Shown here in pieces: positions 304 through 57,100 of a DNA stretch of 57,939 nucleotides. The position numbers were made by a program, and so were the translations under genes. The stretch comes from Klebsormidium nitens (Eukaryota; Plantae; Klebsormidiophyceae): positions 1 to 57,939 of the forward strand of contig DF237510.1 of assembly GCA_000708835.1 (NCBI GenBank), given 5' to 3'. The notes below the pieces were generated by a model. That model ran no database searches and was not told the origin of the DNA. It saw nothing but the letters and a program-made list of their open reading frames with translations. Within the stretch, counting starts at the first letter, position 1. Each line of letters starts with the position of its first letter.

Positions 304-3300
304 CTGAAGTCCAGATCTGCAAAGAGCCCGGTGTCAGCGGGCACCTCGACCTTTTCCGCTGGAGCTGCAGGCTCGTCAGCGTAGTTACCAGCATACGCTC
401 GGGCGCGACCCCACTCGGCGACAGCCCGGCAGGCGGCATGCAGGGCGGGGCGAGACTCTGAGCGGAGGATGTACTCAAGCCTGGGGGACATAAGAAAACT
501 GATTTAGTGCAGAAGAAATCTTTCCATAGACGGCACAACTCAGTACAAAAAACATTTCCCAACCACGAGAAATTGGGTGTTTCAAGACATGTTCAGAGGC
601 ACGGTCAGGGAGATTTGTCAACCAGTTGATCTGAACAAGAGAAGCACCGTCTCCAAGCGCCTCGATCTCGGATGGATGGAACAAGACATCATGCCGCATT
701 GTGCTGCTAAAGGGCAACCTATTATAGTTGCAGTGGTCCTGAGCCGTCTCCCGAACACCCTAATACGCGTCACTTTTCAAAGCTTCCAAAACATCCGTCG
801 GGTTTTCAGACGCTTTCCAAACCTTCCGAACTGTTTCACGCTCATCGTTGACCGCCACCAAGAGCACCGGTTCAACGGTCGTCGCTGCCGGCGCCGCCAC
901 TACTAGCGCCCTTTCTCGGCTTTGCCACTATACTTGAAACTTTTAGGGCCCATTTGAAGATCAACCCCATTATTTTCTCGATTTTATACTGAACAATGAA
1001 GTAATCTTCGCAGGCTCCTTACAGTTTCTCAACGTCCCCCGTGCCCTCACCTTTGGGCCGCGACCGAGAGCACCGGTTCAACGGTCTTCACCGTCGGCGC
1101 TGCCGCTGCAGCGCCCTTCTTCGGCTTCGGCTCTTCGCCCCCGTTCTCGACCACCATCGAGGCCTTTTGAAGAAGCATCCAGGCGTGGGCGCGAGCGTCG
1201 GGGGATCCCTCGCCGTTGATGCTGCCCACCATGCAGTTGATGGCTTCGAGCGACACCTGTCGGAAGCGCAAAAGTCGGCTTTGAACTCGATCATAGAAAC
1301 AACTTTCGCCTACTTGAGAATGGCAGACGGGCATGGGAAGGGAAGAGAAGGTAACTACTTGCCAAACGTGGCATTACAGTAATTTGAAATCTCGTCCAGA
1401 TGCCAATAGATCCAGACGCTGAATGGTAGCTCTGCATGCGGAAGCACGGCAATATGGTTGCGACAGGCCAGGCCACTCGTAATAGGTACAAATCGGGAAT
1501 ACCAGCTTGCCAGGACAATCAATAAGGTGATGATAGTACTGTCAGAGGATGCAGATAAGTAGAGAGAGAGAGTCGTACCTTTGTGCTGGGATCCAGGATG
1601 AGCTTGAAGAGTAGCGCGCCAAACTGCGACTGCAGGTCGGGCCGGGCCAGCGAGGGGGCGAACAGGAGGATGGAGCTGAGCCGGGCGAGGTAGACGCGCG
1701 CGAACACGTCGGGGCATTGGACTTGCTCGCCAAGGGAGATCGAACCTGGCACGGATAGCGGACGATTTCAGGATTCTGGTTGACGAGTCAGACCATGAAG
1801 GGCCTGCTTTTTGGGTGAGCTCGCATTGATATTTTGAGAAGTAGCACTGAGATTGCTTTCGAACAGAGACCGAACCTGGCACGAATCCACGAGTTCTCGG
1901 AAGAACCCCAGCGAACTTGGTCGGCAAGGAAGTGACAGAGTCTCTCCATACATTTCAGCCGTTTGAAGGGGAATGCCGGCGACACTAAGCTTTGTCCAGT
2001 AGACACGCACAGCCTACGCCCCCACTCTCCAGGCACGACGTATCTTCCGGCGTTAATCAGTGCCTCCTCCATGCATTTCCGTTATTGGATCAGTGTCTTC
2101 GGCATGTACGTACCACACGCCGTACCTTCAGCGGAACCCGTCCCCATGACTCTCAAAGCCCCAAAACCCGCAAGTGGCTTGCTGCCGCGTTGATCCTCGA
2201 ATGCTATGAACTCAACACCAAATTGTTCCAGGGAGTCGTAAACCGCAAACGAGCGAGCACCGACACCCAAAAGAAGCCCAAGCAGATAGAAACCGAAACT
2301 TTGTACTACCGTTTGAGACATCCGGCTGGCCAGCCACGCTTGAAGCGAAACCTATCAGACAAGAATATGGGTACATCCGCAGAGCTCAACGTTTTTGTAC
2401 ATAAGAGTCCCTAGAGACGCACCATCTTTGGACATCTTTGAGAGAGCCGAGGCGACGCCAGTTGGGTTTGCAATGGCCAGCGTGCAGAGGATCGCAAGCG
2501 CATGCCTTGCAGCGACCGGGTCAGCTGCACCAACTCCCTGCAGATCAAAACGAGAAGATTCGCTCAGATCCTCGATTGAGTGTAAGCCGTCATCCGATTG
2601 TCGTCGATACGTAATCGGGACGCCAATGCTCAACCACAGTCCTTCAACGATCGAGCTCGGTCTTCGCTTCGAGGCACATGCCCACTTTGACTCAATCACT
2701 CAAGTAAAGCGCAAAAATCTCGACCTTCTAAGCAAAAGGCCTGTTTAAAAAGAGATATAATGATTCCTGTTCTGATGGACAAGTACCAGGCAATGTTCTT
2801 GACGGACGAAGTCCATCTTTCGTACCGGGAGCATCAACCCCAAGGCGGTTCTATCAAAAGATCATATCGTTCCCCTTGAAAAGAGTGGTCGTCATTCACC
2901 TGCGCAGAGTAGTTGAGGAGCTGCTGATTCCCAGGGTCTGCCGGCAGCCTCCGGAGAGCCGCCAGGGCCGCGTACTGCAGGTTCGCTCGAAGCGCAGTTT
3001 CCTTGTCGATTGAGGATCTTCCAAAGATCCCCCGCTTGGCGCGTTTCAGTTTGGACCCATCATTTACCTGACAAGTAGACCGTGAGTCAGGTTCTGCTAC
3101 TGTTGTGAAGAAACCTTTTCGAGATAGCAGTCTGTTGTCAGGGATGCGACAACTTCCTCAATATGAGATACTATGCCACCCGTTCCTGCACTCGGTCAAT
3201 GATGCACCAGAAGAGATCGACAAGTCAAAGATTGAATTCGGGACTGTAGGACGCACGACGCTTTTCTGACGTTCTCCGAACAGCGTTCATCTGCTGCTCG

Positions 3301-6300: not shown

Positions 6301-6435
6301 CGGCACTCCATCAACCGGGAGGCCAGAAGAAGACGCACCCTTCTTTGAGCTCTTCTCCGCTTTCTTGCCTGATTGCGCAGGGGTGTGATCCATAAGATCC
6401 ATGAGGTTCCCCGGCGCCCCTCCATTTGCAGCCAT
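304..6435 (-). CDS. TASH3: TASH3 (TPLATE/TSET complex large subunit), 5' ten exons; gene presumably continues past the left edge
   Basis: GT-AG exons with consistent phases: 6435-6250, 5294-5235, 4760-4668, 4180-3998, 3639-3487, 3067-2900, 2537-2423, 1745-1579, 1256-1051, 480-304. The spliced peptide contains PISYGQLAKSVIELAA, KQLVSSIFPKLSVF, EDRATLRYVFYYLGRIL, RANLQYAALAALRRLPADPGN, ADPVAARHAL, DVFARVYLARL, RLEYILRSESRPALHAA. I recognise these as matching Arabidopsis TASH3 from memory. No stop codon is reached, and the SH3-bearing C-terminus is not in the window. Confidence 0.87.
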
Positions 6436-7348: not shown

Positions 7349-10300
7349 ATGGCATCAGCGCTTGCACGGAGCAGCCTTCCGCTTCAGCCCCGACTTGCTG
7401 CGCAGCATTCTGCTCCCGAAAAGAGATCACAGTCGAGCACCCCCATCAGATCTAGCTCACCAGGGCACGCGCGGTGTACTCAAACCCGTGCATTCAAAGG
7501 TTTCAATGGTCTGCGGGCTTCTTCTCTGGTTTCCAGTGGATCTGCACAAAATGTGAATACGCTCTTCAAAGATAAGGTGGCTGCTGCAGCTCTGCCTGGC
7601 GCCCATTCAGGAAGGGGCAGGAGGGGCCAGATTGTCTGTGGCGATGGCATGAAGCTCGTCTTTGTTAGTGCTGAGGTTGCGCCTTGGTCGAAGGTGAGGT
7701 GTTGATCTGCAGTTAGTGGTTCTACAAAATGATTCTTTCATGAGTCGAGAACAACTTTTGGTTGCTTTGTTGGAGCGTGAGCTAGGGATCCTCTCAAGAA
7801 GAAGCCTGCGCAATGCATTCTGCACTGTTGACAGTGGCGCCATTGTGTGCTGAATCGGGATACTTGTGCTGCTCAGCAGCTGGTCAGCACTTAGAGATAA
7901 TCAGATATTGACTCTTGGAAACCTGGATAGAAGGTATAACCAAGTTCCTGCATTGTCCTATTGCAGACTGGCGGCCTTGGCGATGTGCTTGGAGGGCTAC
8001 CACCGGCGCTTGCTGTAAGTCAACAATATTGCAAACATGCTTTCAATATCGAAGTCATGCTTTTGAGAACTCCACTTCAGAATCTCTGCTTTGATCAGTC
8101 CTTGTTCTAAAACAGATTGTTGTCCAACTGGACAGGTGACTGTCAGCGGATACCCTTCAACCTGTCATGGCGCTTGTAAGAGTTTCTCAGATGATGGATG
8201 TTGAACCATGCTTGAAACCTTGCCATGCTTGAATCAGTGAGCAAGTGAACTTTGCACACCAAAGTAGTGGTTGGAGTGTGACACTCATGTTATTTTCGCA
8301 CTGTTTTTTGGGGGTTCGTGGGGTTTCTGCCACCATGTTGCAATGTTCAGGCATCTTGAAGATCTTGATGCAATCCACTTCATGACGATGATAGGGTCGC
8401 TATTCCCCTTCCCCTGGATGGCGTTAGTGAGATGAATTGAGTTCAGCTCTATAAGCAATGCCGCCGCGGCTGTCACTTCGAAGCAATGCATCAAGAGAAT
8501 CATTATTGCTTGGTTATGCGGTTTGAGAACCAGAGAGATAGGCAAATGTCTCACTTTCTTGACATACCTTAAGTGCTCTCATCCTTCTAAATCGTACAGG
8601 CACGTGGACACCGGGTTATGACGGTTTCCCCTCGGTATGACCAGTACAAGGATGCCTGGGACACTGATTGCACTGTGGACGTAAGTTGGTCAGACGAAGC
8701 TTTCCAGGGTGATTAGAAGTCAGAAATTCAAGGCTTCGTTACTGAATGTTGTCCTAGGAATGCTTTTCTCCATCAGAACCGTCACCTTTGATTATGCGCC
8801 TAATGGGGGTTCAATCGAGCAATCCTGACAAAGTGTTTAAAAATTGCACCACGCTAAAGCAACAAGCTGCAGGACCAAAACAGTGTAGCACTGCTACACA
8901 AGCCTCTGTAGCAAATCCACAAGAAGGGAAGCAGACAATGATCCCCAGCTGGTTGACAGACGAGTGTTCTCATTGCGAGTGGCATGGTTGGAATGCAAAA
9001 AATGCATTAGATGCGCGCGTGAAGTGGCACGGTTCAGATGGCGCCGACATCCAGGGTTGCTTGTACCATGAGTGCGAAGAGTCTTTCAAGGGCTTTTATT
9101 AGTTGCGAAACTCAACGAGAGGAGACTGAATCACTTTCCGCCTCGTGGTGTGGTTCGAATTCCAAATGGCTCGACTATAATAAGATGCTCAGAATGTTTA
9201 GTGTTTGAGTAAGAACCTTATGACGGACTCCTGTCCAACCTGCATTTTTCTAGACCGATAAATGCCTTGGGTCGTCAAATTCCTATTTTACTTCACTGTT
9301 CTGGACCACGGACATTACCTTCTGGAGATGGGAACAGAATCTCACGAAGCAGAGTCTTCCTTTTCTTTACAGCTGAAGGTTGGGGACAAGATGGAGACGG
9401 TGCGCTTCTTCCATTGTTACAAGCGAGGTGTCGACCGTGTGTTTGTGGATCACCCTCTCTTCTTGGCAAAGGTAAGAAACCCCACTAAAGGTGCAACCGC
9501 AGCGGCAAAGCATCAGAAAACATCCCGAGCTTCACAGCCTGAACAGTGCCATACGTCCAAACAACAGAGGTTGGATGGAGACCCTTCTCGAATAACATTC
9601 GAAGCTTAGATTCCAGACATGTGCATTGGAAGAGGTAATGTGAAGTGATCACAGAGCCGTACAGATATAGCATAATTGGGTATGCGGTTGTCATTCACGA
9701 GTAGTACAGACAAATCTCAATTCTCGACTGACTTAAAACGCCATTCAAGTGGGGATATATCATGCTTTCTTGTAAAGATGAAGGCCGCTTTTGGCACATT
9801 ACAGGCCTTCGTTTCTTCGAAAAATAAACAGATAAAAATCAAGGTGTGAAAAGTAAAGCCATTAGTTTTACTCGAGCAATTTCAATTCTCAGGTGTGGGG
9901 CAAGACTGGCGGCAAGATCTACGGGAACAAGACTGGCGAGGATTTTGAGGACAATCAGCTGCGGTTCAGCCTCTTCGCTCAGGCGGCCATTGAAGCCCCC
10001 CGTGTGCTCAACCTGACAAATAGCCCCCACTATGACCGGCCGTACGGTGAGCTGAGGACAGACAATGTTTGACAATCTTCGGAATCTTCAGCAAGTGCTC
10101 TTCCCCCCTGCTTCCCTTTCTACAAGGATCCGCTGGCGCGTTATGAATTGGTTGACTAACCGGGCTCTGGTCTATTTGTTCGGCTTGTTCTGTCGAAACC
10201 ACTTATGTCGCTGCCCTAGACCGTTGGAACGGAGTTCGAGTGCCATGTTCGTGGTAGCAGCTAAGAGTTGCACCAATGCCAGACGAAGCGCTTTGAACTT

Positions 10301-13300
10301 CAATGTTGTGACCCTGTTTCAAGCAGAGTAGATCGCGATGGCTTGCTAGAAAGCTGAAGTGTGTTCGTTTAACAAGTCGCAAACCTACTGAAGCACAGGG
10401 TAATCGACTTCTTGCCCCGGCTCTTGGCTCAGAAGTCTCAATTTCTAGAGCCCTGTCCCCAAAAATGACTTCGTAAGTTACTTCGTTTCTCCCCCAGGCG
10501 AGGACGTCGTGTTTGTTGCGAACGACTGGCACACTGCCCTCCTTCCCTGCTACCTCAAGTCGCAGTACCAGCCGAATGGTCACTTCACCAGCGCTAAGGT
10601 GGGTGTCATGGTCAGCGTGCAAGTGAAGCAGGCATACTGTTCAAATCTTCTAGCGTGAATTTCTTCCATCTTTTGTCCGCAGATGTCCTTCGAGACAACC
10701 TGCTGACTCCATGGATCCGCCAAAAGGATGCCTTGGGTGGTTTGATAGTAGTCAACATCGCTGTCCCGTTGCCGCCTCGAGATGCAGACGAAGGTGTTGG
10801 CAATTTGAGATACGCTTGTGCTTGTACAAAGCCCTACACCGCTCATTCGATGACGTCACCCGTGAGTCCGCCCCCGCCCTGACCTCATGCTGACGTCACG
10901 CAGGTCGCCTACTGTGTCCACAACATCGCCTACCAGGGCCGCTTCGCCCCCACCGATTTTGCCAGGCTCAACCTGCCCGACTCTTTCAGAGACTCTTTCG
11001 ACTTTTGGGACGGGTGAGCAATTCTCCTGATAGTCTGGGTAGATGCAGCACGGAGCTTCTTACTCTGTTGTGCTGTTCGGTGCAATCACTTTGGAATCAA
11101 GCGCAGATGGTCGACACAAATCATATTTAGAGACACAGACTCATCTTTAGAGCAAGGGCCAGGATTGAGCTTCTTTCTTTGTTCGGGAAAAGGTAAAATT
11201 GGCAGAGAATGTAGAGTTGGTAGCGGTGAGGAGGTTCCAATGTGTTCCTGGCATCCGTTGAACTCATACGTCAGTACCAACTACCGAGAGCGACCTGCAC
11301 TTTTTAAGCTGAGAGCAAAATTGGAACGATCTTGCAAACTTTCTACCTGTTTAGCAAAGCACGGTTCCGGCAAGAAGATCAAAAGGAAGAGGGCCGCATT
11401 CGTGGAGTCTATCTACTTCTTCCCGTCAGACCTGACGACCGCGCTCCATTTGCTCCGTAAATGGAGCAAATGGAGCATTCAAAAGCTGAACTTACTAACA
11501 CAACGTGCAATCTGTTCAGGTACTCAAAGCCCGTGGCTGGCAAGAAGATCAACTGGATGAAGGCCGCGTTCCTGGAGTCCGATCTAGTTCTCACCGTGAG
11601 CCCCAACTACGCGAGCGAGCTGGTGTCCGGCCCCGACAAGGGCGTCGAGTTGGACGATATCGCCAAGAAAGTGGGCGTCAAGGGGATCGTCAACGGAATG
11701 GACGTGGCGGAATGGGACCCGGCGAGCGACAAGTACCTGGACCAGACGTATGACCTGGACACAGTAAGTTTCAGAATCACTTATGGTGTGTTTGGCTACT
11801 GGGCTTCAATCGCGGAGGGTGTCAGTCGACGTATAGGAAGAGCTAAGCGTCAAAGGGAACGTGATCAAAATGGATGTTACCGAGTAGGATCCAGCAAGTA
11901 GAGTTACCTGGACCGATAGTACAACCGGATACGGTGAGCATTTGGATGCTTTACAAAGAGCCTATTTCTTCCATTATCTTGGTGGAAGTTCCAAAAGTTT
12001 GGGGGGAGTGAAAATCTACTTCAACGGCTTTCATCGACGGACTGGATGGTTTGGGAATCGACCTGGTGAGCGTTTACCTGGGTCTACGAAACGACTTGGG
12101 AGGCGGTGAGTCTGTTGGAACCTAAAAATCTGTACCATTTGTGCCAACGTACACAAAACGATTGGGGTGAAGCAAAAAAATTTACCAAGATCAGTCAACA
12201 GCATTGCTGGAACCGCCTCTTTCGGACCAATTTACATCCGGCATCTGTTCCTCTGTCATGATCGTTGCGCACAAATAGGGCGCGCTCAAAAGCCGAATGA
12301 ACCTCGTTCCTGGCCCAGAACGGACTCTTCTTCTGCACTAGTTCAGTATTCACCCGGATTCCGTTCCCTTTTCACCAACGGAACCCGGTTTCTCTCGCAG
12401 GTTCTGGAGACGAAGCCCATCCTGAAGGAGGCCCTGCAAGCGGAGGTCGGGCTGCCGGTCGACCCCTCCAAGCCGTTGATCGGCTTCATCGGACGGCTGG
12501 AAGAGCAGAAGGGGTCGGACATTCTGGCGGGGGCCGTGGGCGACATCGTGAAGGCAGGGGCGCAGCTGGTGGTCTTGGTAGGTCGCAAATCATTCACACT
12601 GACCTCAATCTGCAGCTTTGTGGTTGGTCTGTCTTGCTTGAAGGTTTATGACGTTGCGCTTGTTCTGCTTCGCCAGCGAGCCGAAGGAACAGCTTGCGGA
12701 CAGCTCAGCGTCAAGAGAGACGCACTGAGTAGCACTTTGCACGCAGCATCAGTGCGCATGTCTTCTCGAGCTTGAACCTGTCAGACCCTCAACCGCAGCG
12801 AGGGGCGGCTTTCTATGTCTGTCCGGGTCCCAAATACTTGTGTACGAGCAGAGTAGGGGTGTCAATATGCTGTCCAGGTCAAGAAGATGATAGATCTCGG
12901 GAAAGCAGTCAGGGTACTCGTACACATCATTTGGCCTGCATGACCGCTATGCTCACATGCTGACATGCTTTACTGTTAAGATGAAATACAACGAGGAAAC
13001 ACGAAAAAGAAACTGACATCTCTGGTTAACCCGGGGCTTTCTCTCGAGCAGGGCACGGGCAAAAAGTACCTAGAGAAGCAGCTGGACGAGCTGGACGCCA
13101 AGTTCCCCGATGGGGCCCGGGGCATCGTCAAGTTCAACGTGCCGCTTGCTCACCTGATCATTGCGGGTAAGGAGGCGCTTGAAGTTTTCGCGGGGCTGTT
13201 TCGGGTAGTGGATGGATTGCAGCTTTCAGATTTGATGTGTGCTTCAAAGTGGAGGGTCTTGAAAAAAATGATCACTCATCATTCTTCCGTTTCGGGCTCT

Positions 13301-15707
13301 TGAAAGAAATGTTTGGAGAGAACATTTTTGGAAAGTATCTTCTGATCTCAGATTCTGTCCACAAGTGCCGGGCCCGGCGTGTTTCGACTCACCGACCTGA
13401 CAGTTATGATCTTTGTTGCTGCCCAAAGCAGAACAAGGCTCGTCTTTCTTCTCGTTGAAAATGTCTTCCAGTTGGCTGACGTCGCATGCCTTGCCCGCAT
13501 GCTGTGATGAAGTCTCAGGCGTTGACTATCAGACGGTTCCGGCCGCTTGGAAGACTGGCATCCTGACTTGCGATTTTTTTCTGACCGACTTTGACGTTCC
13601 TCGGGAAAACCCTCTAATCCTGAGCTTACTTATGTCTTCCTTCTGCTGACGTCACTCTGTGCGCTGACGTGACATGCGCCCACTGCCTGGTGATCCTCAA
13701 CCGCTTCGAGCCTTGTCTCGCCTGACTCAAAAGGGCACCGTTCCGATTGTCGCTTCCACAAAGGGGCTCTTTGACACTATCCAATTTGCTGCTGACCTCC
13801 TTGAATCCGCTGACGTCACAGGCGCGGACTACCTCGTTGTTCCGAGCCGCTTCGAGCCTTGCGGTTTGATCCAGCTGCAAGCAATGCGCTACGGCACCGT
13901 TCCGATTGTCGCTTCCACTGGCGGACTGGTCGACACCGTTACCGAGGGCGTGACCGGTTTCCACATGGGAGAGATGGACGTCGACTGTGAAGAGACCAAG
14001 CCAGAAGACGTGAAGAAGGTGAGTCGTTGACGTGTTAGAAGCTCAGTGTCAACTTATTGCGGGCCTCTACCAAGAGAGCAGCGGATTCTTTTAGCGTGGA
14101 CGCAATCAATTCGTCGAAGAAACCTGACGTCGTCAGGTAAGGACGCCAGCGTGTCTCCCGATGTCACTGCTCGCCCGTGTCAAGATTGTTGGGTTGCAAA
14201 GGGCGGTCGTTTTTTCCTACCGCTGGAATGAGTGTCCATCGTGTAGCCACCGCTTCTCATACCTGAAGAAGGTGCGGAGCTGCTTCTTTGAACTACAAAT
14301 CAGACCGTGGCCACCGTTGCTAGAGGTGGAATTGGACCCAATACTCGATCAACAACAGGTTCACCTGACCGCCAACCTGACATATAACCTACCTGTAGCA
14401 ATTTGGCTCCGATTCTCTCTCAGGTTAGGCGGGTCGAAGTTAATTCCCGGTTTCGGTCCTTACCCCCTTTTGATGGGTCGGTCGGTCCGGGAAAAACACT
14501 ACTTGGTTTTATGCTACCATGTGCAGAAAATAGGATATTGTTGGGCCTAAATCCTACTTTTTGCCCCAGGTGTCACAGTTTTCGGATTGCCATGACCCAG
14601 AATCGCCAAAATTAGGTTCAATAGTTGACAGTGTTGATATAATGTTCTGCACAATTTTGGGATTCTGGATCAGTCGAAGACCGGAAACCGGGACTTGACT
14701 TCGGATGGCCTTAGGAGACACTCAAAAAGAAGGGATAACCCATTGGTTGCTTCACTGCAGGTCGCGGAGGGCGTGACGAAGGCGCTCGAAGTGTACGGGA
14801 CGCCCCAGTTCGACGAGATGATCAAGGCGTGCATGCAGCTGAACCTGTCGTGGGAGGTGAGCCACGTCTACTTTACTTTAGGTGCTGCGGTTCGCAACTG
14901 TGATTTTAATCCATCATTGAAATAGCAATGCCCTCTCAGGGCGGTTTCGTCAGGTCGAACGGCTTGGCAAAACCGTCCAATGTTGGTGCGCCAGATCTGA
15001 GAGAATGGTCGAGGCGGTATGCAGTTGAACCTGTCGTGAGAGGTGAGCGTTCGTGTCTGTTTTTCCTGGTTGCTGCATCTCAGAGTTTGCGTTGAAGCAG
15101 ACGGTGTACCATTTTACGTTGCGGCGGCAGAGTTGCGGAGATATTTGGTACGTCACAGTTGACCAGCAATCAAGGCTTTTTGTTGGAGGTGGGCTTCTAT
15201 CCGACTGTCTGCGGGTGTTGTAACTTTAGTTCTCCCGTCATTGTTTGCTATTAAAGCATCTTTGGAATTGAATGACTGTCTCCGGGTTTTGTCTCTTCGT
15301 GGTTCAAGCACGCTCTGCGGGTGACGGACCTCCGGTTCTCGCATTTGGCAAAAAGGGGCTTGCTGTGCACCCGGCGAGAAGTGTGCAGACGTATGCAACG
15401 AAGGCAACCCTTGCCCGCATATCAAACAGTTGTCAAGCAAGGCTTGTCCGTTCGTTACAGTATGTTAAAGCCCAACCCCCAATTCTGAAGTCTGGATGCA
15501 GAATGAAGGGTAGGTGAAGAGTCGTGGAGAAGGCTGCGTTATGGTATGACTGAGAGTGACGGGTCTGTGGACACCTGATATTTGCTGCAGAACCCGGCCA
15601 AGGAGTGGGAAGCCGAGCTGCTGAAGTTGGGCGTCGCCTACAGCGAGCCTGGCAAGGAGGGCGTTGAGCTGTACCCCAAGACGAAGGAAAATGTCGCCAC
15701 TCCCTAA
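7349..15707 (+). CDS. GBSS1: Granule-bound starch synthase (GT5, waxy/GBSS), plastid-targeted, 13 exons, 627 aa
   Basis: Exons 7349-7693, 7967-8014, 8600-8680, 9373-9471, 9893-10046, 10498-10598, 10904-11013, 11520-11763, 12401-12577, 13052-13166, 13822-14018, 14761-14856, 15591-15707. All are GT-AG with matching phases, total 1884 nt. Motifs: Ser/Ala-rich transit peptide, [60 protein letters not shown], and the GBSS-type C-terminus KENVATP*. Confidence 0.97.
14954..15042 (+). other. Pseudo-exon: decayed tandem copy of GBSS exon 12 with intact AG and GT
   Basis: CAG|GTCG at 14951-14957 mirrors the true acceptor at 14758. Positions 15019-15048 match 14833-14862 at 28/30, including the GTGAGC donor. 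It is 89 nt long, so not a multiple of 3. Confidence 0.8.
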
Positions 15708-41454: not shown

Positions 41455-44400
41455 GTGGCCCCATGCATCTGCGACAACATTATTGCTTACGCATGGTCTC
41501 CTCCATCATGCAGCGTATCCAGACAGCCTCCTGTCAATGAGAACGGCCTTGAGCTTTGCACCTGCGTCTTTCAAGGCTGTGGCAAGAAGGACGGCCGGTT
41601 TATCCCGAGAACAACACGCTTGCATCAAGAGAAGAAAGACAGGGAAGTAATAGAGGCAGCAGAAGTAGTTCGCATCCCAGATGGCAACGGCGTTGAGATC
41701 AGAGAAGCAAACAATCAGCAACAGAATGCTGATCAGGCTCAGCCGGCCGGAGGTGCTGGTGGAAACGCTGTTTGGCAAGGGCTTGCAAACCTCCTGGACA
41801 TTGATGACAATGAGGCGCCAGACTTGAATCCAACAGAAGCTGAGGAAGCAGATTCAATGGAGGATTCGCTGCTCTCAGGAACAGGAGGGAGGTTTCTTGA
41901 CAAAGTTCTGGACTTAGTGAAAAAGGGCGACGAGGCTGGCTTTAGCAATGCCGACCTCGACTGGATCTTGAAGTGGGGTTTTGGTCAGAAGGACTCAATT
42001 GCAGAGGCACTGGATCCGGACTGGCGCGCCACAATGAAGGAGCTCAACGTTATGGATTCGCACGACCAGGTTAGCTTACATTTGTGCTTCGTAATTTCAT
42101 TGTCACCTTCTTCGTTTGACTTTAGATTCTGAAAGGTACTTCTGAGGCTTAAAATTATAGTCTGCATGAGTCCAGGTATATAGCTTAGCTGAGTCTTTTG
42201 TCCCTGCTCAATCTTTGGAAAGAGTCATTGGCTCCAATTCACCTTTTAGTGCAAACAACTTGGTTGATTGCTTGAAGAACAGACTTTGCATGAAGCTAAG
42301 GGGCTTGGAATCATAATATTAATCTGCATGAGTCCAGGTATACAGGTCAGCTGAGTGCTTTGTTTCTTCTCAATCTTTGGAAAGAGTCATTGGCAAAACT
42401 TGTCTTGGGTTCACCTTTTAGCTTAAAATGTTTTAAACAAGATGTCTGGCTGATTGTTTGAATAGCAGACTTTGCAGTGAAGCAAGCGATTCACATTTTG
42501 TATGCAAAACCATTTCACTTCGGATCGTCATCGTTGGTTACAGTTAATCACTTCAAGCTCCGTCCCCCTTTTGCCAACAGGTGCAAAGTTTCCTCATGCG
42601 CGTGTCGCGCCTGCTCGGTGAGCCTCAGATGTGGCGGTTTCACGAAGGAGCCAACGGCAGCTGGCACCTTTTCAGACCGAGCGCGGAAGACGGAAACCTG
42701 CCCTGCCCCCACTGCCCCGAAGGGCCCAGCCGGCCAAAGTGGCGCGACTGCTCCGCGCATCAGGAGCGGAGCGAATGCGGCTTCCTCCGGCGGGACGCGC
42801 TAGAGCTGCCCTACATCGGGCTGGAGCCGTACGTGCGGGCGAAGCTGACAACCGAAGCCGGCTGCCAGGACATGCTCGGGGCTTGGCGAGAAAGAGACAG
42901 GTGGCTGAATCAGCCCCCCGACAGTGTCCCGGAGCCGCAGCTGGAATACTGGGACGGGAAGCGCTTCAGGGAGCGGTCTAGTTTCCTCGACCCCAACGGC
43001 ACGTGGCTGCTCCCCCTCGCTTGCGCAAACTGCTGCCGTCCGCGCCCCGTGTACTGCTCTGAAAACCTAGAGCTTCCCTCCTACGTTCGTCCAACTCAAG
43101 CCATGTGGAATGCAACCACCGGAAGTTTTGAGACGGAGTGCCCCCTGTGCCGGCAGCCAATAAGCGCGAAGAGGGAGGAGCTGGAAATCTCGGGGGACCC
43201 AAGAAACGTGATCTTTGGTTGCCACGTAGATGGCTTTCCTTCCTCGCGCACGACAAACAAGAGCAGCTGCATCCTAGACGCAACCCCCCTGGTCGTCTCA
43301 AAACGGTTGCGCTACCGGGCCTGCGAAGGGTGGCTCTGGCCCCTTTGTTTTCCCCCGGAAGAGAAACTGAAAAGCGGGCCGGAAGCGTACGACCCGTTCA
43401 TCCTCCTTCTGGTCCTAGATTCGGTTCGGCTTTTTGTAGAGGGGATCTTGGTAAACTACGCCCTAGATCCTGCAAAAGTGAGCCCCGACGTTCCCCCCCG
43501 ACACGGACAGCCTGTGCGCATCCGGATGATAATGTCCTGCTTCTTCGCCGATCTGCCAGCCCTTGCTGACGTGGCGAAATTCAAAAGGGGGGGGTGGCAC
43601 GTGTCGCGGCGGTGTCCGCAGCTGGCTGTCCGAAACGGAGATCGGTTGGTGTACGCGAATGGGCGGCGGCTTGTGCGTGATGGCTGCGGAAGCAAGAAGA
43701 TGAAGGACGTGGTCGCGGCGATGCTGGAGCACCTGGGGGCAAGAACCAAAGCGGAGCGCGACGAGATCGGCGCGAGAACCGGGGTTGTTGGGTTCAGCAT
43801 GCTGGCCATTCTGGGGGGCGTGTACAGCTTGGACCTGGTGCTGGACATGTGCGGGGACTGGCTGCACAAGGGCTCGGAGAACCAGGTGAAGCACCACGTA
43901 AGAGACACCCTGCTTCCGGTCACCAGAAAGGAAGGCGGCCTCCTGGTGCAAGAAGCCCCCCCCCGGATCAACATCAAGGATTTCGGAAAGCGGCTGCAGG
44001 CGATAAAGCCGACGCGCAAGCTTGCAGACGGCCGGTGGGTCAAGGACCCGGAAGAGCGCCCCCTCGGGTTCTGGAAAGCGGAGGAGCACGAGAAGGTCGC
44101 GCTCTACTGCCTGCCGACTGCGTACGCGGGGCTCATTGACGAGGAAGGGTATGCCATTACCCAGCTCGTCGCGTGCATTCAGCAAGCAGTATTCATTGTC
44201 GGATCGCGGGAAGGCTGGACGCCGCAAAAGCGAGCGGTGTTTGACCAGCTGTGCAGAGCCAAGTTTGCGCGCGCCGAGGAGTACTTCGGCTCCAAGCTCC
44301 GCCCCCTGGAGCACGAGACCTGCCTTCACACCCTTTCTGATATCCTGAACCACGGGCCTCCGGACAGCCTGTGGTGCTATCTGTGCGAAAGGCACATCCG

Positions 44401-46328
44401 CAAGCTCATCAACACCCCGAGCAACGGAAAGGAATACGAAAAGACGTTGTTCAAGCGGGCATTGAGTGCTTTGGTTGGCGGATGGCTGCAACAGCGGAGA
44501 AAGGAAGCGGCGCTGTGGCGGACGCGGCAGTTCGCGGGAGATGAGCTGTGGGCCGAGGCAAGGGAGGGGTTTGAGGGCGGGATTCTGTTCGCCTCTTCTC
44601 AGAAAAGGGCCGTCGCGTTTGTCGAGGGCCTTGAAAGGTGGCCCCCAAGCAACCGGCAGCCGTCGGACGTCGACCTGCTCAACAGCGTCCAAGCAAACGG
44701 GGTCGCCGTTGGGAGTGTGCCACGAACCTGGGGTTTCCGTACGTTCAAGACCCTCAAATCCCCCCAGCGAATCGGCGTAGAGAGGTGCCTAGCCCGCGCA
44801 CCAAACGCAGCCGCAAGGGGCCTCCAGCTGGATCCGAAGACCGTAGTGAACCTGAAGAGCCTGCAAAGCGGGGAGCATAACTTTGCCCCAAAGGACTTCG
44901 TGGTCGTGCGGGGGGGTGCGCCGGGCGGGGAAGCGGCGGACGAGCAGTTCGGACGGCTGGAGAGCATCTTCTGTGTCGCGAATAGGCGAGGCGCGAGGCA
45001 CGTGTTTCTGGATGTGAGATTCTTCCCGGTTCAGATGGAAGGAGGCGAGCCAGCGGGGGGGCAGTGGCACAATTGCCTCTTGCTCGGCACTTTGAAATCT
45101 CTGGCGGCAGACCGCGTGCGCCCGGCAAGCAGCCTGCTGCGCCACTTCATTCCGTTCGCCGAGCCAGGCGAGACCGTGTTCACGAGCGCCGCGAACCACG
45201 TCATCGAGGTCTGCCCCACCGGCTTCGGTTTTGCAGCGCACGACGTATGGGTCCCGGTCTTTCCCAGGGTAAGTTCGGCCGGCCTTGAATCTATTTTAAC
45301 TGCCCGCATCGACGGAGTCGAAAATCTTCTCAAGGGTTGCCAGAACTGGAAGTAGAATAAGCAGCAAAGCGGTCGAACCAACGCGCAGACTCCTTGCTTT
45401 GTTTGCTTCACGAGTTGAGCTTGTAACGTTCGAAATCCGCAAACAGCCAGTCGGTGCGCGCGCACGTCGATTATGTTGACCCAGATCTCAGTCAACCAGC
45501 GCTTCAAACTGCAATGAGTCATTGCGCTTCAAGCCTCGTCTGTGATGAAGCCTCAAAATCCATTAACAAAAGGTTATAGCGCACTCAGTTCTACGCTCTG
45601 CAGCTGGATAGATTTGCCACGTCAGCGGGTAAGGCGCCGGGTTAGAGCGCGGTTAAGTATTGGTCAAGGCCGCGCTCGCCTCGACCCCTGATTCTACTGC
45701 GGTCTGCAGTTTTTAAACTCCCTTCCCTCCACGGACGCTCTATTACAGCACGCGAAGAGAAACGATTGGCGCGCTCAAGTTTTGACTCTCCTCTCTTCAA
45801 CAGGTTGGCGACGTCGTCCGGCTGCCGGTGGTGGAGCCTCCGGACGTCGTCCCGGAAGGGGTAGCGGGCAAGTGGGGCTACGGAGTGCCCGTTTCTGTAC
45901 TCAAGTCGGTGCGGCCGGGGCAGTCGGTGGCGTACGCTCTCGTCCGGCAAGTGAACGAGGACGGCAAGCTGGTGGACGTGCAATGGTTGAAGCGGGCTCC
46001 GGGCGAGAGGGCGCTTCCGGACGGCAGCAAAGCCGGCGTCTGGGGTTTGTGGCCGGTTAGCATGCGAAGAAACCGGAACGGCACTCTGGTCGAGGAGGTG
46101 GAGGGAGACTCTGCGAGCGACTCGGAAGAAGACGGGGAAAGAGGTCGGCGTCAAAGGGGCGGGGCAGCAAGGCCGCAAGGGGGGTTCGCCTTGAAGCGCG
46201 CGCCTTGGAACGCTCTCCTCGACCGTGTCGAGGGCGTTGTCAAAGCGGAGAGAGATGCAAACGGACGTGCTTTGGACGGAGGGCCACTTTTCAGTTTCAA
46301 AGAGCTCCCCCCGGTGCGGCGCAGATGA
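41455..46328 (+). CDS. CMC-EnSpm/CACTA-type DDE transposase (Tnp2/Transposase_21-like with DUF4218-like region), about 1250 aa, at least 3 exons, start codon unresolved
   Basis: Exons <=41514-42069, 42581-45268 (896 codons without a stop), 45804-46328, phase 0. Motifs: YWDG, RNVIFGCHVDGF (D1), FFADLPA (D2), SRRC (C2C position), GDWLHK, WKAEE, HETCLH (H-x4-H), HGP..LWCYLCERH (E). Confidence 0.88.
42150..42480 (+). repeat. ~162-bp tandem duplication inside transposase intron 1
   Basis: TCTGCATGAGTCCAGGTATA at 42161 and 42323; CTCAATCTTTGGAAAGAGTCATTGGC at 42207 and 42369. Confidence 0.9.
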
Positions 46329-47722
46329 GCGGGGCTTAGAATAGTAAGGGTAGAAAGGTGGGGCCCTAAAAACGGAAGCACGGAGAGCGTGTCACTTGCA
46401 TACAGAACCAGATTGATGTGGAATTGAGAAAGTGCATTGAGTACGGGCAGACAATCACCCGCTCATCTTTTCGTTTCTGGTGGATGGTTTGGACGGAACG
46501 GAATCCGAACGGCAGCAGAGTGGCTGGGAAAGCGGAAATTGGCGCCCGGTGGGGGCAGTCGGGCAGGTCACTGGTGGAAGCAAGGGTTCGGACAGCTCTC
46601 GAGCAGAGATTGGCACCTGGTAAGAGCAGCCGGGCACGCCCAGAGTGGAGTCGGGGTCGGCAAGGGGCGTCGGGCAGCCCCAAAACGGATCGGAGGCATC
46701 GAGGAGGGGACTTCGAAGAACTTTCCCCGGGTGCGGCGCATGATCAGGGGTATATCAGGTGCGTTCGACATTCGATCTCTATACTCTGTTAGATCAAGCG
46801 CAGTCATGATATGGCAAAGCTATCAAACTGCTTTTGCTTTGAGGTAGCAGATAAGGCGCACGCGCGAGTTCCCGGGCGATCCTGCTTTCTTCGCCCTTCT
46901 TCATGTGCTCAAGAGTTTCGCTTTGAACCTACTCGGAAAGCCTGGCAATCGTACGTTGCAAAGCTGGAAGATAAATCTCTTCAAGTTCGTGTTTCTTTTA
47001 AAGTTCCAGCTTGTCCCCGGATGATGGCGAACTTTCGGATGGTCCCTCGAAATTCTAATGGACAGACAATGTTTTGGTAGAGGGCTATCAATTGTGAAGT
47101 GCCGCCCGACGAGTGCCCATTTCAAAAAGAAAGCGAAGAATGTTTTCTTGCGGCTTGAGGTCAGGCGAATCCGTAATTTCATATGAACGGAGCTCCGTTG
47201 AGCTGGTCAAACGCTCTAACGGAGCGCGAACTAGCATGGCGGGAGAAAAATTCAAGGTTAAGGATTAACCCGAATCTCAGTTAGCTGACCAAATTTGCAG
47301 AACCCAGCAGGAAAAGGTACTTTGTGATCAGCTTAGCAAGGCGCATCCGAATCAGACCTAAAAGCTTATAGCACATGTACTTTCCGTAACCTGCGGAAGC
47401 TCAAGACCGCCACGTGTCCGGGTTAGGCCGGGTTATCGCGCGAAAATGCAATTCGATCGAAAATACCGTTTCAGCGCAGAGTTTAGAATAGACGTCTTGC
47501 CTGCTGATTTGCTTGCGCAGACTCGACGAGATTGCTGATGCGCCTGTTGTATGTTGCACGTTTCTTTCAACTTTTAACCAACTTCCGTGAACTTTCACTT
47601 AACTCTTCTAACCTACGCGTAGATTCTTAATGACTGGCGCCGCTCGAAGGCCCTCGAGGGGGATCCGATCCAATTCAAAGGAAGTTTTGCTGTTTCGGGT
47701 TTGCCGGTTGTTTCACTTTTCG

Positions 47723-47759
47723 ACCTTCCGTAACCTTCCGTAACCTTCCGTAACCTCCG
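47723..47759. repeat. Tandem decamer (ACCTTCCGTA)x3 + partial
   Basis: Read directly from the sequence. Confidence 0.85.
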
Positions 47760-50354
47760 CGCAGATCCGGAACGAGTGGCGCTGGCCCGATGCCCTCGAG
47801 GGAGATCCCCCCGTCTGGCGCGCCACGTCAGAGGGACCCCGCTCGACCGCCAGTTCCGCTTTGTCTTTTACACGTGGCGCGCCGGACACACGGCGCCAGC
47901 CAGCATGCGGACAGAGGGGCGCTGACGTCAGCCCGTGTGGACAGGGCGGTGCTGGCGTCAGCCCGGACCAGGCCCCGCTATTGCTGCTTCAGCAGACAAG
48001 GCAGCAGTTGAGCACGGAAGAAGTTGCACGGTGAGAATTTTGGTGACGTGGCTGAACGGGTGCGGTTACTGGGTGGCATGGCCACCAATGAAACGGCAAA
48101 ACCTGGTGCGGTCACCGGCTGTGAGAAAGGTCTCGGAAGCTGTGGTTTTTGAGAAAGCGCGCCGAGACACTTTGCACCTTCGTCTTGCTGTTTTGGGTGT
48201 TGGCTTTCAAGGGGTCTCGAGGTTGTCCCGTTGCTCGTTTGTCCTGCTCTCTAAGTTTTGGGTTTCGAAGGTTTGGAGGGGTGGAACGGATCAGTGCAAT
48301 TTCTAGATGGGGCCATTGTTGCGTGGAACCTGCGGTTCAACATCAAGAAAGCTTGGCGGAGGCGCTGATATAAGTCGCGCGCTTTTTGGACGATGTGGCT
48401 TCATTTTGGCCAGACTACGGCACGCTTGTACGGAGTCTTTTGGCGATGTTTTGATATGGAAAGCGACTTACCTGCAAGATGTTTTCGAAGACGTCCGAGC
48501 GCCTTGCTAGAGGCTGAGGCCGCCTCATGGCTGAGAAGTATGTACAGTAAACCATCTTCATTGTGAAACCTCAAAAGCACGTGTTTAGTATGCTGGGGCT
48601 TTCAGCTGGGCTTGTGGCCGTCCGCTCGGAATGAAGGACTGTTCTGGTGTTCTAAAATGAGAAAGAGCAAAACTCAGTCGTCGAGGGAACTTTCAAAAGC
48701 CTTTCGAAGTCAAGCTCTTTCAAGTCGGAACTTGGACTACCAACCATGGGGGGAAGAGACATGATAATCAGTGACCAAGAGCGGGTGCGTACGTGGAGCT
48801 CGCGCAAAACGAGGTAAGGTCCTGCTGCAACTTGAAGATCATTTGCCTGCCTTCTGCTGCAGCTTGTCCACGGTTTCCCGATCGAATATTGTCGAACGCA
48901 GATCTATGTGCCGTTCGTACTGGCATCGGTCTCTTCTCAGTCTTACCGTATTCAGATATGTAAGTCACTAAGGATTTCTAGTTCTCCAGCATTCAATGGT
49001 TTTAGCAAAGACTTCTCTTCGAAGTGTATCTTTGGCAGTACATCTTTGCAACGGTTTTGATTGTGAGATGAGATAGACCACCATAAGCGTTGCAAGAAGA
49101 AGAATTGCCTACTAATTGATTCTGACCAACTGCTCCAGTTGATCTCGTTTGCTTCATCGCTAAGCTTTCGACGTCTGATTATGTTAGAACATGTTGATTT
49201 ACACCATCTGCTACATGAATATCTCAATTCGATCCCTGATGACGAATCTCGACTTCGACTCCAGTGATTCGTCTCATCGGAGTTTTCAGTGAGAAATTGA
49301 AGTCGCCACCATCGTTTTCCAACCATTCACGATTCGAAACCAGGTTACACCTAGTTATTTCTATCCGGGGTGGCTCCGGGGTACATCTGGACCTTTCAAT
49401 ACACGATACATCTCAATTTCGTAAGACCTTTCGAAACAGGACACGTGTGAACTTTCTTAACCAGGGTGCATCAGCGGTAGATTCTAAGCAGGACCCCTGA
49501 AACAGGTTGTCGGTTCGATTTTGTCTCTGCATCCAAGTTCTGGTGTTGTCTTGCTACTACGTCTCCAGATGCGACAGTCGAGTCCGATGTTTTCATGTCG
49601 AACTGTGCCGCTCTTCGTTTTGGCCCAGCCCTGGTCAGGCTTACGTGGTTCTCTTGTTTGACATATGATAAAGCTTTTGAGTCGGAGCTCCAATTCGAAA
49701 ATGGTAGACGGCCAGGCCAATCCAACATGAAAAAGAGTGGAGTCCGGGAATACAAGAAATACAAGAGAGGATAGTTGCGAATGCCTGACGGAAGAACCTG
49801 AACCGTACGTATCCACGCTTTGTGGATACATATGCAGATATCTGGAGTACAGAACAGCAGAGCGCTCAGTGAGCACATCAAATATAGCTAAAGTTGCTTC
49901 AAGCCCAGTCATGTGTGCTCTTCTGGAGTCATGTATTTCAGAAAATACTTTGTCTTCGGGACCAGTTTTGCCCGGACCCGATCGACTGGCCCGTTCATAT
50001 CAGATACATACATACACACATGGCGTCTTTCTCATGCAGGATCAAGGGATGACTGGAGCTCGGAGCTGCATTGAGGCCGAAGCGGGGTCACACGAGGCGA
50101 TGGATTGTTGCAGACATAGATATCAGGTTGCACCGGATCGAATCTTGTAGTGGAGAGGATATATGTATATCAGAGGTTACTTCGGATCAGGCTTGCAGAA
50201 ACATTACAACTGCAACGAGACACAAGTTTTGGTACACATATATACTTATTTCGAAACTGTTTTCACAAGCCCGGCTGTCCGGGCTGTCAATCAAGACACT
50301 GCTGATTCGCTTTTCGAACACGCTGGAATCTGGAACGCGGCTAAGTAAACTCCT

Positions 50355-50650
50355 CCCCGGGGTTCCGTCCGCTGCCCGGACTTGCTTGCCCGGACTTGTT
50401 TCTTGTGTTCCCCGAGCATGCGCGTTCCCCGGTGTATCAGCTTTTGCCCGGACTTCGTTGCCCGGAGTTTGCCTTCGTATTCCCCGGACATGTCTGTTCC
50501 CCGGGCTTCCTTACCCCGGGCAGCAGCTCGGGGAGTCATTTCCCCGGCCTTATCTCCGGGGAACCCTTGCCCAGGGATCCTCCAACCCCGGGCAAATCAT
50601 CCGCCAGCCCGTTGCCCGGCCTCAGGCCGGGGAAACCCCGGGCAGTAAGC
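50355..50650 (-). repeat. Right subterminal repeat region (multiple TTGCCCGG / CCCCGG motifs)
   Basis: Inverted counterparts of the left-end CCGGGCAA motifs. Confidence 0.8.
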
Positions 50651-50676
50651 CCGGGGAAACGGGAATCCGCCCTGTG
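50651..50676 (-). repeat. Right TIR
   Basis: CCGGGGAAACGGGAATCCGCCCTGTG, followed by TTT. Confidence 0.95.
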
Positions 50677-54183: not shown

Positions 54184-57100
54184 TCAAGAAGCAATTTGAG
54201 GCATTGTCCGTCGGGGCAGCACCCTCGAAATGGTGGCGAGCTGTTCGACTGAGAGCGGGTCCTGTTGCAAGGCATCCCGAAGTTGGGCTCGCATGACCTG
54301 CAGCCAGGCAAAGACGCTCTTCAGACATAATTCGCATAACACTGCAAGAACGAGATGATTAATCTGAACTTACTGAAACCCCAAATCGCTCGGACTGCTT
54401 TCAATTGTCAGCACGTGACCGGCAGACACTAAGCACCGACTAAGACATGCAGAAGCCTGCTTCAGACCTTAGTGGACGATGTTTTGGATGGGGACTGATC
54501 ATTACACCAGGCGGTGTGCGCAGCGATGAATCTTTCAAGAATCAGTGCTCTTTCAAACCTGGCGGTGGAAGAACGGGTCGAAAGGGCGTAAACGTCCAAT
54601 CGTGCCTAAACGGACCTTAGCGTCTTGACTGTTTGACACGCAGCCTGTTCTTGGCCGTTTAGCAGCTACTAGGGAACTAGAAATTCAAGCGGAATAAACG
54701 TCGAGCCGATGGGGATCACCGGACACGACTAAAGTCGTTGCCGGTGTGGCAGACTACTGTGCAAAGGCAAGACGCTCGCTCTCCAACGTACAGCAGAAGA
54801 CAAGTTTTTTTTGGCCACTGCCAGCAAGCAACGCCACGGAAAGCGTGGACGTTCACCGACACGATAAAGAAACTTCGACCTTCGTGAAAATCAAGTAGAT
54901 TTGCGAAATATCGAAGTTGAATGAAGACAAGAACAATCCGGCAAATCTGCTCGCTACGAATTGAAGCCGCAAGGCTGGAATCCGACCGATGATATGAAGG
55001 AACCTTCCGTCTGGAACGCTGAAACGGCAATAACGCTCTCCCAAAACTAGAACAGATAAACTGAATCAAGGAGACTCTGACGGCTTGTATGGTCAAACCC
55101 TCATCCCGCTTCGAGGGTAACAACAGGTAAAAGTTCGTAAATCTGCACGATCAGCTTTTTGAGGACGAGTAGCCTTTTGCGATGACGAGAGGCCTTTGGA
55201 TTAGCAGCTCCGATCTGAACGCCTTCTCAGTATTCGCCACCCGCTCAATTGCTCTCACAAAGAAACCTTTTCTGTCCGCCAAAGCTCAATCGACACATGT
55301 CACTACGTGCTTACCTGCACGACCTGCTCTCGGATCGGTTCGGCGTCTGCCCCGTGGTCCACGAGCAGCCACTCCAGCCAAGAGTCGACGTTGGCTGACG
55401 TCACCTCCACGAGCTGGATGACGTCAGCGCACAGGCCCGGGACGCCGCATGCGTCAGCGAGCGAGAGGACCTCCTGAAGACACAACAGGGCGTGACAGTC
55501 ATTGTACTGAACGTAACTCGGATCAGATGTGAGCATCTCAATATGCGGGCGCATAAAGGATGTGGTCACTCCTTCCAAAATCGTGCGCTCGACGGCCTGG
55601 AAGTAACAAGGATCCCGAGCAGGCTGGCCGAGGAACATCGAGAAGCGCTCCAGCATCGAGCGAGAAAGATGAATCCAAGCACAGAGCCAATGTCAATAAG
55701 TTGACCCGCGGATTAGTGTCCAGATGTTCAGCGATTTACAGTCTGAGCTGTCCAGACCTAGGGTACTCTGGGCCTTTACCTCCAACTTGGATCAACCTCA
55801 AGGTCTAAACTTTGCCCTGGGTTGTAAAGGAAGTAACCCATGTGACTGCTTATGGGAAGGTCCCATTATACGCTCGTACTTTCTTTGGATGCCTCCGATT
55901 AGGTACGGATACGCAACATTTCAACAGCAGAGCGCTTCCAAGGCCACAATATCAGAGGTGTGCTGCCGAGTCCCGTCGGTATGCTTCTAATGCTCAGGAA
56001 CTCGACGCCAAGCACCAAGAAACATACGATGAAGGGGTCAAAAGCCATCCTTCTGACTGTACGGGGAATACGAACTTCACCGTGAAAAAGGGACGGTCAC
56101 TGGAGTTGATTGGATAACGTCAGCACCCAAGCGAGACACCGCCGAACCTGAAATGCCAGTAAGAAACGCACCTGGAGCAACAGACTTTCTGGATTCACTT
56201 CGTACAACGACCGAAGGTCCCCATACAGGCCTTGCAGGAAGAGTTTGAGCGACTCTGCTCCGGCGGGGCAAGGCAGGCGCAGGCGCAGTTTGTTGTGCAG
56301 GTTCCAGGTGGTCGTCCCCGACCACTCCTCTCGCAACTTCGCCTCAAAGTAGGGCACGTCGATCAGGACGGCGGAGTGTGCCGCAGCCTCTATGCTATCC
56401 TACGAGCAAAAACAGGATTCGTTTAGGAAGAAAAGCAGAGGGCAAGCAGCGAAAGCTTGTTCAAGTACTCACTTGGCGCCATGACGCTCTGAACGAAATT
56501 GCAGATGATCAAGGGGTGTTAACGACGGCTTTTGTAATGGATACAGGCTCCTCTGCAGAACGTTGTTGTGGACTTTTCAGACCTCTACATGTGCCAATTG
56601 TTTGCTACCACTTCAAGCTCCGTTCCTTACAGCCCTCGTATTGCGCTTGCCCCAGGAAAGGGCCAAAAGAAGGAAAACATGTTCCTCCTACCTGCGATTA
56701 TTGCACACTGATCAATCTCTGGAGTGCGCAGAACATTCGACATACGATCTTCGAGAAGCAGGGAGTCATATTCGATGCTTGTTGAAAGAAGTGACTTCTT
56801 CTCCTGGCTTGCAACTGCAGACAAGCGCAAGTATTCTCTTAACAGACTTTTGGGGAAGCACCGCATGCTTTTGCATGCTGTCAGCAAAGAACTGGATAGA
56901 GGGGTCAGATAACCACTCACCCCACATACAAGAACAGTGTCTCCTGTCCGATCTGCTGTTTCTAGCAACGCGCTCTTTGTCTCAGGCGCTTTCTTGCAGC
57001 GTAGCCGAGTCCAGTCCGGCTTAGGCATCCTCCGTGACACAGAGAGATTGAAGTGAAACATCATATAATCACCTCTCGTCGTGAACCTCAAAAGTCCAGC

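Follow-up and report, generated by a model that had tools for sequence, protein, structure and literature searches.

The tandem genomic duplication model of intron gain, or internal gene duplication, is said to have been treated by Rogers in 1989, by Gao and Lynch in 2009 and by Hellsten and colleagues in 2011. It is the model closest to the elements described here, namely degenerate copies of exon edges and their splice sites, which lie in introns of a stretch of 57,939 nucleotides (nt) of the Klebsormidium nitens genome (contig DF237510.1, positions 1-57,939; the whole stretch is called the window), among others in a starch synthase gene, GBSS. As in tandem-duplication intron gain, the copies are adjacent to their source and have the same direction, new intronic DNA stems from the neighbouring exon and intron, and the GBSS mRNA is unchanged. 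In contrast to that model, all copies lie in existing introns, and the creation of a new intron from a duplicated AGGT was not seen. They also differ from the described cases in that they are frequent per gene, are stacked in ladders with as many as seven units, show a narrow size mode of about 166 base pairs (bp) and recur at the same junctions of a sister species. A tandem duplication inside a gene can be harmless, because, with a second splice signal, the additional copy can be removed by splicing (potato RdRp, PMC4974935; review PMC3443670).

Introners, found in Micromonas, Aureococcus and others, are transposon-derived introns for which insertion into the linker DNA between nucleosomes has been proposed (PMC9860276, its reference 12). 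Two features of introners recall the present case: they add intronic DNA genome-wide in algae, and a link to nucleosome spacing has been proposed for them. Introners form dispersed families of many copies, carry terminal repeats or target-site duplications and create new introns, whereas the copies in the window are single-locus, were made from the neighbouring exon and lie within existing introns. Tandem exon duplication, with mutually exclusive exons, is reportedly known from animal genes, as treated by Letunic, Copley and Bork in 2002. It also yields same-direction exon copies in a flanking intron, which are often unannotated. However, duplicated exons are whole, have both splice sites and are often in frame and used, while the copies described here contain one edge only, decay neutrally and are unused in the GBSS RNA contigs. 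Satellite and minisatellite arrays consist of head-to-tail monomers of about 150-180 bp, change their copy number and show higher-order periods. Such periods (320-334 and 654 bp) were also seen in one array of the window, in the gene BTB-A. Unlike satellites, the arrays in the window are tiny (2-7 units) and genic, consist of local sequence and are anchored on a functional exon that serves as master copy and changes slowly. No description of dense junction ladders of about 165 bp was found in the literature, neither for Klebsormidium nor for other organisms.

The K. nitens assembly comprises 104.2 Mb in 1814 contigs, and the G+C content of the window is even, at about 51%. A preliminary description had claimed that splice junctions in the window are accompanied by local duplicates in the same direction. 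A repeat search up to 400 nt revealed same-direction repeats spaced 130-217 nt at most of the sites it had named. Tandem Repeats Finder reported zero repeats with a period above 30 nt in the window and thus none of the periods of the junction copies, showing that these are too worn for this program. An ungapped scan yielded 47 segments, all at offsets of 30-1000 nt, and none in three block shuffles. In a gapped scan, 80-nt subwindows were compared with the following 80-800 nt at a cut-off score of at least 30. This score was reached by 65 of the 1427 subwindows at offsets of 80-800 nt, by 0 of 1352 against sequence 3 kb away and by 3 on the reverse complement. Dozens of matches were found at 110-240 nt, compared with 0-6 in distance-matched controls.

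After the removal of multiples within arrays, 14 independent places were counted, whose primary periods range from 122 to 217 nt (median 166-168, quartiles 152-176). Apart from two marginal matches, primary periods of 220-800 bp were absent from the window. The probability that all 14 places fall inside 122-217 nt under flat offsets from 80 to 800 nt is about 5e-13. The pattern is real and recurrent; a flat distribution of offsets or a lack of excess over chance, both named beforehand as refuting outcomes, was not seen in the window. Repeats with a period below 75 nt form a separate class. At 8 of the 14 places the copy consists of an exon edge plus its splice site and lies in the adjacent intron (four in GBSS, two in the gene labelled TASH3 and two in BTB-A, one of which is an array of seven units).

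The density of matches in the band of 120-230 nt was compared with that of other genomes. It was 22 per 1000 subwindows in the window and 31 per 1000 in L002, a 7.3-kb genomic contig of a related species (run SRR23617307), which was found by a protein search with the open reading frame of GBSS exon d. The GBSS-homologue loci of three other eukaryotic assemblies (20 kb each) gave 4-8 matches per 1000, and in one of them the signal was a mere 63-nt minisatellite. In this small control sample of three loci, the size mode looks lineage-specific.

GBSS was the gene for which transcripts were studied. RNA contigs from four public runs (four studies) were placed on positions 9500-15400, and each exon edge was compared with its own intron, with other introns and with shuffles. 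Pfam detected starch synthase domains in exons d and g. The features are:
9891-10045, 10497-10596, 10902-11012, 11519-11763, 12401-12576, 13051-13165, 13821-14016 and 14759-14856, plus strand: GBSS exons with GT..AG introns, from RNA contigs
11519-11763, plus strand: GBSS exon d, with copies on both sides (RNA contigs of four runs; Pfam)
11355-11432, plus strand: acceptor-side copy 1 of exon d, 170 nt upstream (versus 11525-11603), score 66
11244-11297, plus strand: acceptor-side copy 2 of exon d, 324 nt upstream, far more decayed (score 30, shuffle maximum 26)
11847-11938, plus strand: donor-side copy of exon d, 172 nt downstream (source 11675-11768), GT kept
13821-14016, plus strand: GBSS exon g (RNA contigs; Pfam)
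13643-13781, plus strand: acceptor-side copy of exon g (versus 13789-13940), a whole unit of 146-159 nt, AG changed to TG
14759-14856, plus strand: GBSS exon h (RNA contigs)
14988-15048, plus strand: donor-side copy of exon h, 186 nt downstream (source 14802-14862), AG/GTGAGC intact

Clear copies were present at 4 of the 15 junction sides, with scores of 37-70 versus at most 25 in the controls, and the exon edges matched their own adjacent intron only. For acceptor copy 1 of exon d, non-adjacent introns and shuffles reached maxima of 22-26, versus its score of 66. The copy of exon g contains the last 32 nt of the intron and the first 120 nt of the exon. A copy spanning the whole of exon h was not supported (z 1.4). 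The offsets of 170, 172, 146-159 and 186 nt bear out those that had been proposed for GBSS. Of the 4.3 kb of GBSS intron that were examined, exon-edge copies account for about 0.8-1.2 kb, and one BTB-A exon is preceded by about 1 kb of copied material, in agreement with the earlier claim that introns have been lengthened.

The preliminary description had also asked whether the copied splice sites are used. In the assembled GBSS contigs of the four runs, which may miss rare isoforms, the true junctions alone were joined, and neither a joint nor a loose end was found at any copied splice site. Low-depth unspliced RNA contigs from independent studies covered the copies at 11847-11938 and 14988-15048 with zero differences, which rules out an assembly artefact for both. 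One further joint, 10534-13845, was present in all runs and was rejected as a splice event. In each of the four runs, one contig matched 10509-10534 plus 13845-13900 and was divergent elsewhere. Most likely it is a paralogous starch synthase transcript that maps to two conserved motifs.

The names TASH3, BTB and transposase are labels of the preliminary description. Pfam confirmed the GBSS label alone, and searches with single TASH3 and BTB exons and with an open reading frame of 935 amino acids gave no support for the other labels. The exon boundaries of the TASH3-like gene and of BTB-A were read from the sequence by eye. The features of these genes are:
1046-1127, minus strand: source in the TASH3-like gene, the last ~76 nt of an exon plus ~5 nt of the donor (boundary CCCAAAG/GTGAGG from the sequence)
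841-922, minus strand: donor-side copy in the TASH3-like gene, 205/206 nt downstream on the minus strand, GT lost (score 78, 84% identity)
1714-1756, minus strand: source at the second TASH3-like exon, acceptor plus exon start
1844-1886, minus strand: acceptor-side copy in the TASH3-like gene, 130 nt upstream on the minus strand, AG kept (score 34)
26480-27521, plus strand: array upstream of BTB-A exon x, six decayed units of acceptor plus exon start, 153-167 nt
27522-27750, plus strand: BTB-A exon x, intact, the seventh, functional unit plus the rest of the exon (paralogue in BTB-B at 56399-56171)
28521-28599, plus strand: acceptor-side copy of BTB-A exon y (exon 28722-28880; versus 28701-28779), 180 nt upstream, AG kept

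For the TASH3-like gene, the proposed offsets of 206 and 130 nt were recovered (841-922 versus 1046-1127 and 1714-1756 versus 1844-1886), and a third one, 181 nt, was not found in the repeat search. For BTB-A, the array at 26480-27521 and the offset of 179 nt (here 180 nt; 28521-28599 versus 28701-28779) were both borne out. The spacings in the array are 166, 154, 167, 167, 166 and 153 nt. The 5' part of each unit, which now forms the branch site and the acceptor tail, matches the exon sequence 27621-27683, and thus the first duplication took almost exon alone. This would place its upstream end within a few bases of the old acceptor, and CTGC, which is common to both ends, hints at microhomology. 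The higher-order periods of 320-334 and 654 nt reflect later multi-unit duplications. Unit 1 keeps a different original tail, which indicates that the intron predates the array. The BTB-A exon preceding the array was looked for and not found. The introns of BTB-A and BTB-B could not be aligned, so that the inserted material cannot be read there. The offset of 153 nt claimed for BTB-B was not confirmed, and the best match of the exon start was located 694 nt upstream instead (p about 0.007). This match, of the start of BTB-B exon y (56110-56142, minus strand), is weak and lies within the same intron, close to its 5' end.

Repeats of similar size were also found away from recognisable exons:
42140-42488, plus strand: two-copy tandem duplication without exon origin, units of 162 and 186 nt, about 82% identity over the whole unit
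34479-35053: array of about four units of 143-147 nt, no recognisable exon origin
47554-47810: two-copy repeat with a period of 141-147 nt, no recognised exon
33107-33382: two-copy repeat with an offset of 217 nt, no recognised exon

The first of these is the purely intronic duplication of 162 bp that had been described before, and its unit occurs only once in the 104-Mb genome. For the gene called D in the preliminary description, the repeats themselves are real (units of 143-147 and 212-223 nt at 34479-35053, and the offset of 217 nt at 33107), and their claimed origin from exon edges was not recognisable. Since this size is not restricted to repeats at recognisable exons, the size preference is a property of the mutation process and not of the junctions. 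Two other features were seen in these regions. One unit of the array of 143-147 nt is swollen by a 24-nt minisatellite of about four copies (34772-34874). An intronless open reading frame of 935 amino acids with 62% G+C, labelled a transposase in the preliminary description, follows the duplication at 42140 (42548-45352, plus strand); it had no Pfam match at E 0.01 or better.

The preliminary description had postulated a recurrent process and had proposed a comparison of orthologous introns. This was performed with the one related species represented by L002. Its exons are 87-92% identical to the GBSS exons of the window, and its introns are almost unalignable with those of K. nitens, apart from the copies, the acceptor tails and a single short island. 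Repeat ladders were present at the same three GBSS junctions, of about 12 junction sides covered, and they differ in copy number and age. Acceptor copies of exon d were found at -153 and -325, and a donor copy of exon d at +187. At the acceptor of exon g, L002 contains at least three whole units of 145-170 nt, compared with 1-2 units in K. nitens, and the intron has more than 1027 nt in L002 versus 655 nt in K. nitens. The exon g ladder has thus either grown in the related species or shrunk in K. nitens. A contig of the related species with exons g-h was not recovered by a second protein search. In addition, a three-unit ladder with a period of 50 nt starts from the donor of GBSS exon f (L002:6305-6420) and is missing in K. 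nitens; junction ladders are therefore not always nucleosome-sized.

The region of the exon d donor copies is collinear between the two species, and GTGAGCAT after the junction is common to both copies. Both donor copies have kept GATACG (11925-11938; L002 4860-4875), while the K. nitens exon now reads GACACA. Collinearity, the common GTGAGCAT and GATACG together indicate that these copies are orthologous and older than the species split, and one copy has thus been inherited. They are fossils of an earlier exon sequence.

The acceptor side of exon d gave a different picture. The two L002 copies differ from the K. nitens exon d by 9% and 16%, the two K. nitens copies by 25% and 44%. Relative to the inferred ancestral exon, copy 1 has changed at about 4 of 68 sites in L002 and at about 15 of 68 in K. 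nitens. The neutral divergence per lineage was about 0.2, estimated from a single orthologous donor copy; the divergence at third codon positions (0.20) underestimates the neutral divergence between the species. The identity in aligned columns of global intron alignments was discarded as uninformative, because unrelated introns also reach about 0.7. The comparison suggests that copy 1 of L002 is too fresh for untouched descent, and overwriting by the exon would be the simplest reading. The introns of the two species have nearly equal lengths (498 versus 506 nt), which argues for overwriting from the exon rather than for a new unit.

The decay of the copies was analysed with 13 exon-copy alignments (about 1020 nt). 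Mismatches amounted to 17%, 18% and 30% at codon positions 1, 2 and 3, respectively (chi-square p 2e-5), the pattern expected if the copy evolves neutrally and its partner exon changes at silent sites only. Gaps were frequent (17 in the aligned sequence). Neither coding constraint nor a kept reading frame was seen in the codon positions and gaps of the copies. As read from the alignments, about 9-10 of the 13 copied AG or GT dinucleotides are intact, a proportion similar to that of about 0.67 expected from neutral decay. The process has thus left look-alikes of splice sites, as had been claimed, and there is no sign of selection either for keeping or for destroying them. The copies are relics, not working parts.

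Taken together, the copies are probably small tandem duplications that spanned a splice junction, followed by turnover of the arrays and by renewed copying from the exon. A head-to-tail duplication of about 120-220 bp (median about 166 bp) would happen to span a junction. The copy joined to the rest of the exon would bring its own splice site and leave the mRNA unchanged, and the other copy would stay in the intron, lengthen it and decay as non-coding DNA. Once at least two copies are present, unequal exchange could raise or lower the number of units, and a copy could be overwritten anew by gene conversion with the exon, which evolves slowly, as the template. We infer the duplication mechanism, a conversion that would keep only the exon-derived part visible, and a chromatin or Okazaki-fragment length that would set the unit size. 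As the preliminary description had noted, acceptor copies lie upstream and donor copies downstream, yet this is a necessary outcome of any junction-spanning duplication. All eight exon-anchored matches include the splice site and end 5-32 nt past the junction, which fits a junction-spanning tandem duplication and not the copying of random patches. Whole-unit tandem copies of the same size range were found at GBSS exon g and in the BTB-A array (nearly all exon plus splice signal) and, outside of exons, at 42140, 34479 and 47554. The whole unit twice head to tail is recognisable at exon g, in the BTB-A array and at 42140, and at six other places only the exon-derived part is.

Several results weigh against this explanation. 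At six of the eight exon-anchored places, the similarity comprises the exon edge plus 5-30 nt past the splice site, and the non-exon remainder of 50-125 nt is without similarity there, as it is in the exon d ladder of L002. Over all remainders, Stouffer's z was 1.07, and the tail of the GBSS exon d acceptor alone reached z 2.6. In simulations with a per-lineage divergence of 0.10-0.19, the whole unit was still visible in 57-100% of cases. It is thus expected and unseen, so that conversion or an ascertainment bias must be invoked. Copying anew from the exon would explain why the exon-derived part alone stays recognisable. However, a run-length permutation test for conversion tracts was not significant (best p 0.03 of 10), and the excess similarity of the L002 copy is strongly significant only with a neutral divergence of about 0.2. 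In addition, the window contains no very young copy (more than 90% identity over the whole unit), and no breakpoint was directly readable; the ends of the copies are too decayed to reveal terminal repeats or target-site duplications.

The same results would be accounted for if a repair or replication end jumped by about a nucleosome length, copied 45-105 nt and returned, leaving a short insert and no tandem unit. Similarity would then be confined to the patch, as it is at six of the eight places and in the exon d ladder of L002, the whole unit expected from the simulation would never have existed, and patch and spacer lengths could vary as observed, with a constant sum of 130-205. Yet every patch holds the junction and stops just past it; random sources would do so in less than half of the cases each, which gives about 0.002 for 8 of 8. 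Together with the whole-unit tandem copies of like size (GBSS g, BTB-A, 42140, 34479) and the weak residual similarity of the exon d acceptor tail (z 2.6; p 0.02-0.03 across species), this makes patch copying improbable. A process targeted to junctions by transcription, splicing or positioned nucleosomes, which would favour copies there beyond random duplication and selection, is somewhat less improbable, and we regard it as unlikely. It would explain why the same three GBSS junctions are affected in both species, with renewal or expansion at two of them in the related species since it separated from K. nitens, why copies are among the few intron segments alignable between the species, and why 8 of the 14 places are at junctions. 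However, given that introns measure about 500 nt and units about 165 nt, a junction is expected to be spanned in 40-65% of the intronic events that are tolerated, even without targeting. The enrichment was not significant, neither in the window (8 of 14, p 0.05-0.4 depending on the null model) nor in GBSS alone (4 of 4, p 0.03-0.18), and the window neither confirms nor refutes it. The junction is not centred in the unit, its position ranging from about one quarter to nearly the whole of the unit length, like-sized repeats exist away from recognisable exons, and the sharing between species is partly inheritance.

It is very unlikely that the copies are functional, be it as decoy or regulatory splice elements or as alternative or mutually exclusive exons. 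Many copied AG and GT are intact, copies are better conserved across species than the surrounding intron, and some BTB-A units retain an open reading frame. But codon positions 1 and 2 change at the neutral pace, indels break the frames, the splice dinucleotides survive about as often as neutral decay predicts, the unit lengths are not multiples of three, and no GBSS RNA contig of the four runs uses a copy. Copy 2 of exon d is nearly gone in K. nitens, while that of the related species is fresh, which is no steady conservation. An artefact or chance, i.e., an assembly duplication, similarity through codon bias or a dispersed transposon or introner family, can practically be dismissed. The two GBSS copies covered by RNA contigs showed zero differences, copies are present in a different species, and the controls with different distances, non-adjacent introns, the reverse strand and shuffles gave nothing. 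A dispersed family is at odds with the single occurrence of the 42140 unit in the genome and with the origin of the other copies from their own neighbouring exon.

The growth of introns and the source of their sequence are known from only a handful of proven cases. In the window, at least a quarter of the sequence of some introns goes back to the exon boundary of the same intron, the size preference is sharp, and the activity was found at the same junctions in two species. The locus thus offers a system of many dated events for intron lengthening by tandem duplication, for the neglect of nearby intact look-alike sites by the splicing machinery and for a possible control of duplication length by chromatin or replication, and the copies preserve earlier states of the exons. 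For annotation, errors in gene models of the K. nitens genome are likely to arise from decoy sites that are intact and from patches that resemble exons. The putative link to nucleosomes is a match in size, the median unit being 166 bp. A more far-reaching proposal, which we put forward tentatively and hold to be possible though doubtful, is an undescribed process on the scale of chromatin or replication, in which duplications of nucleosome or Okazaki-fragment length copy exon edges into the adjacent intron again and again at particular junctions. If true, introns of this lineage would owe much of their growth to it, and older states of the exons would survive as fossils.

A last observation concerns the 3' splice sites. 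The palindrome TGACGTCA occurs 17 times in the window, compared with about one expected occurrence, and its sites include 10891, 13811, 26680, 26834, 27001, 27168, 27334 and 28589. It is often located 5-15 nt upstream of a 3' splice site and may overlap the branch-site consensus (CTGAC) of K. nitens.

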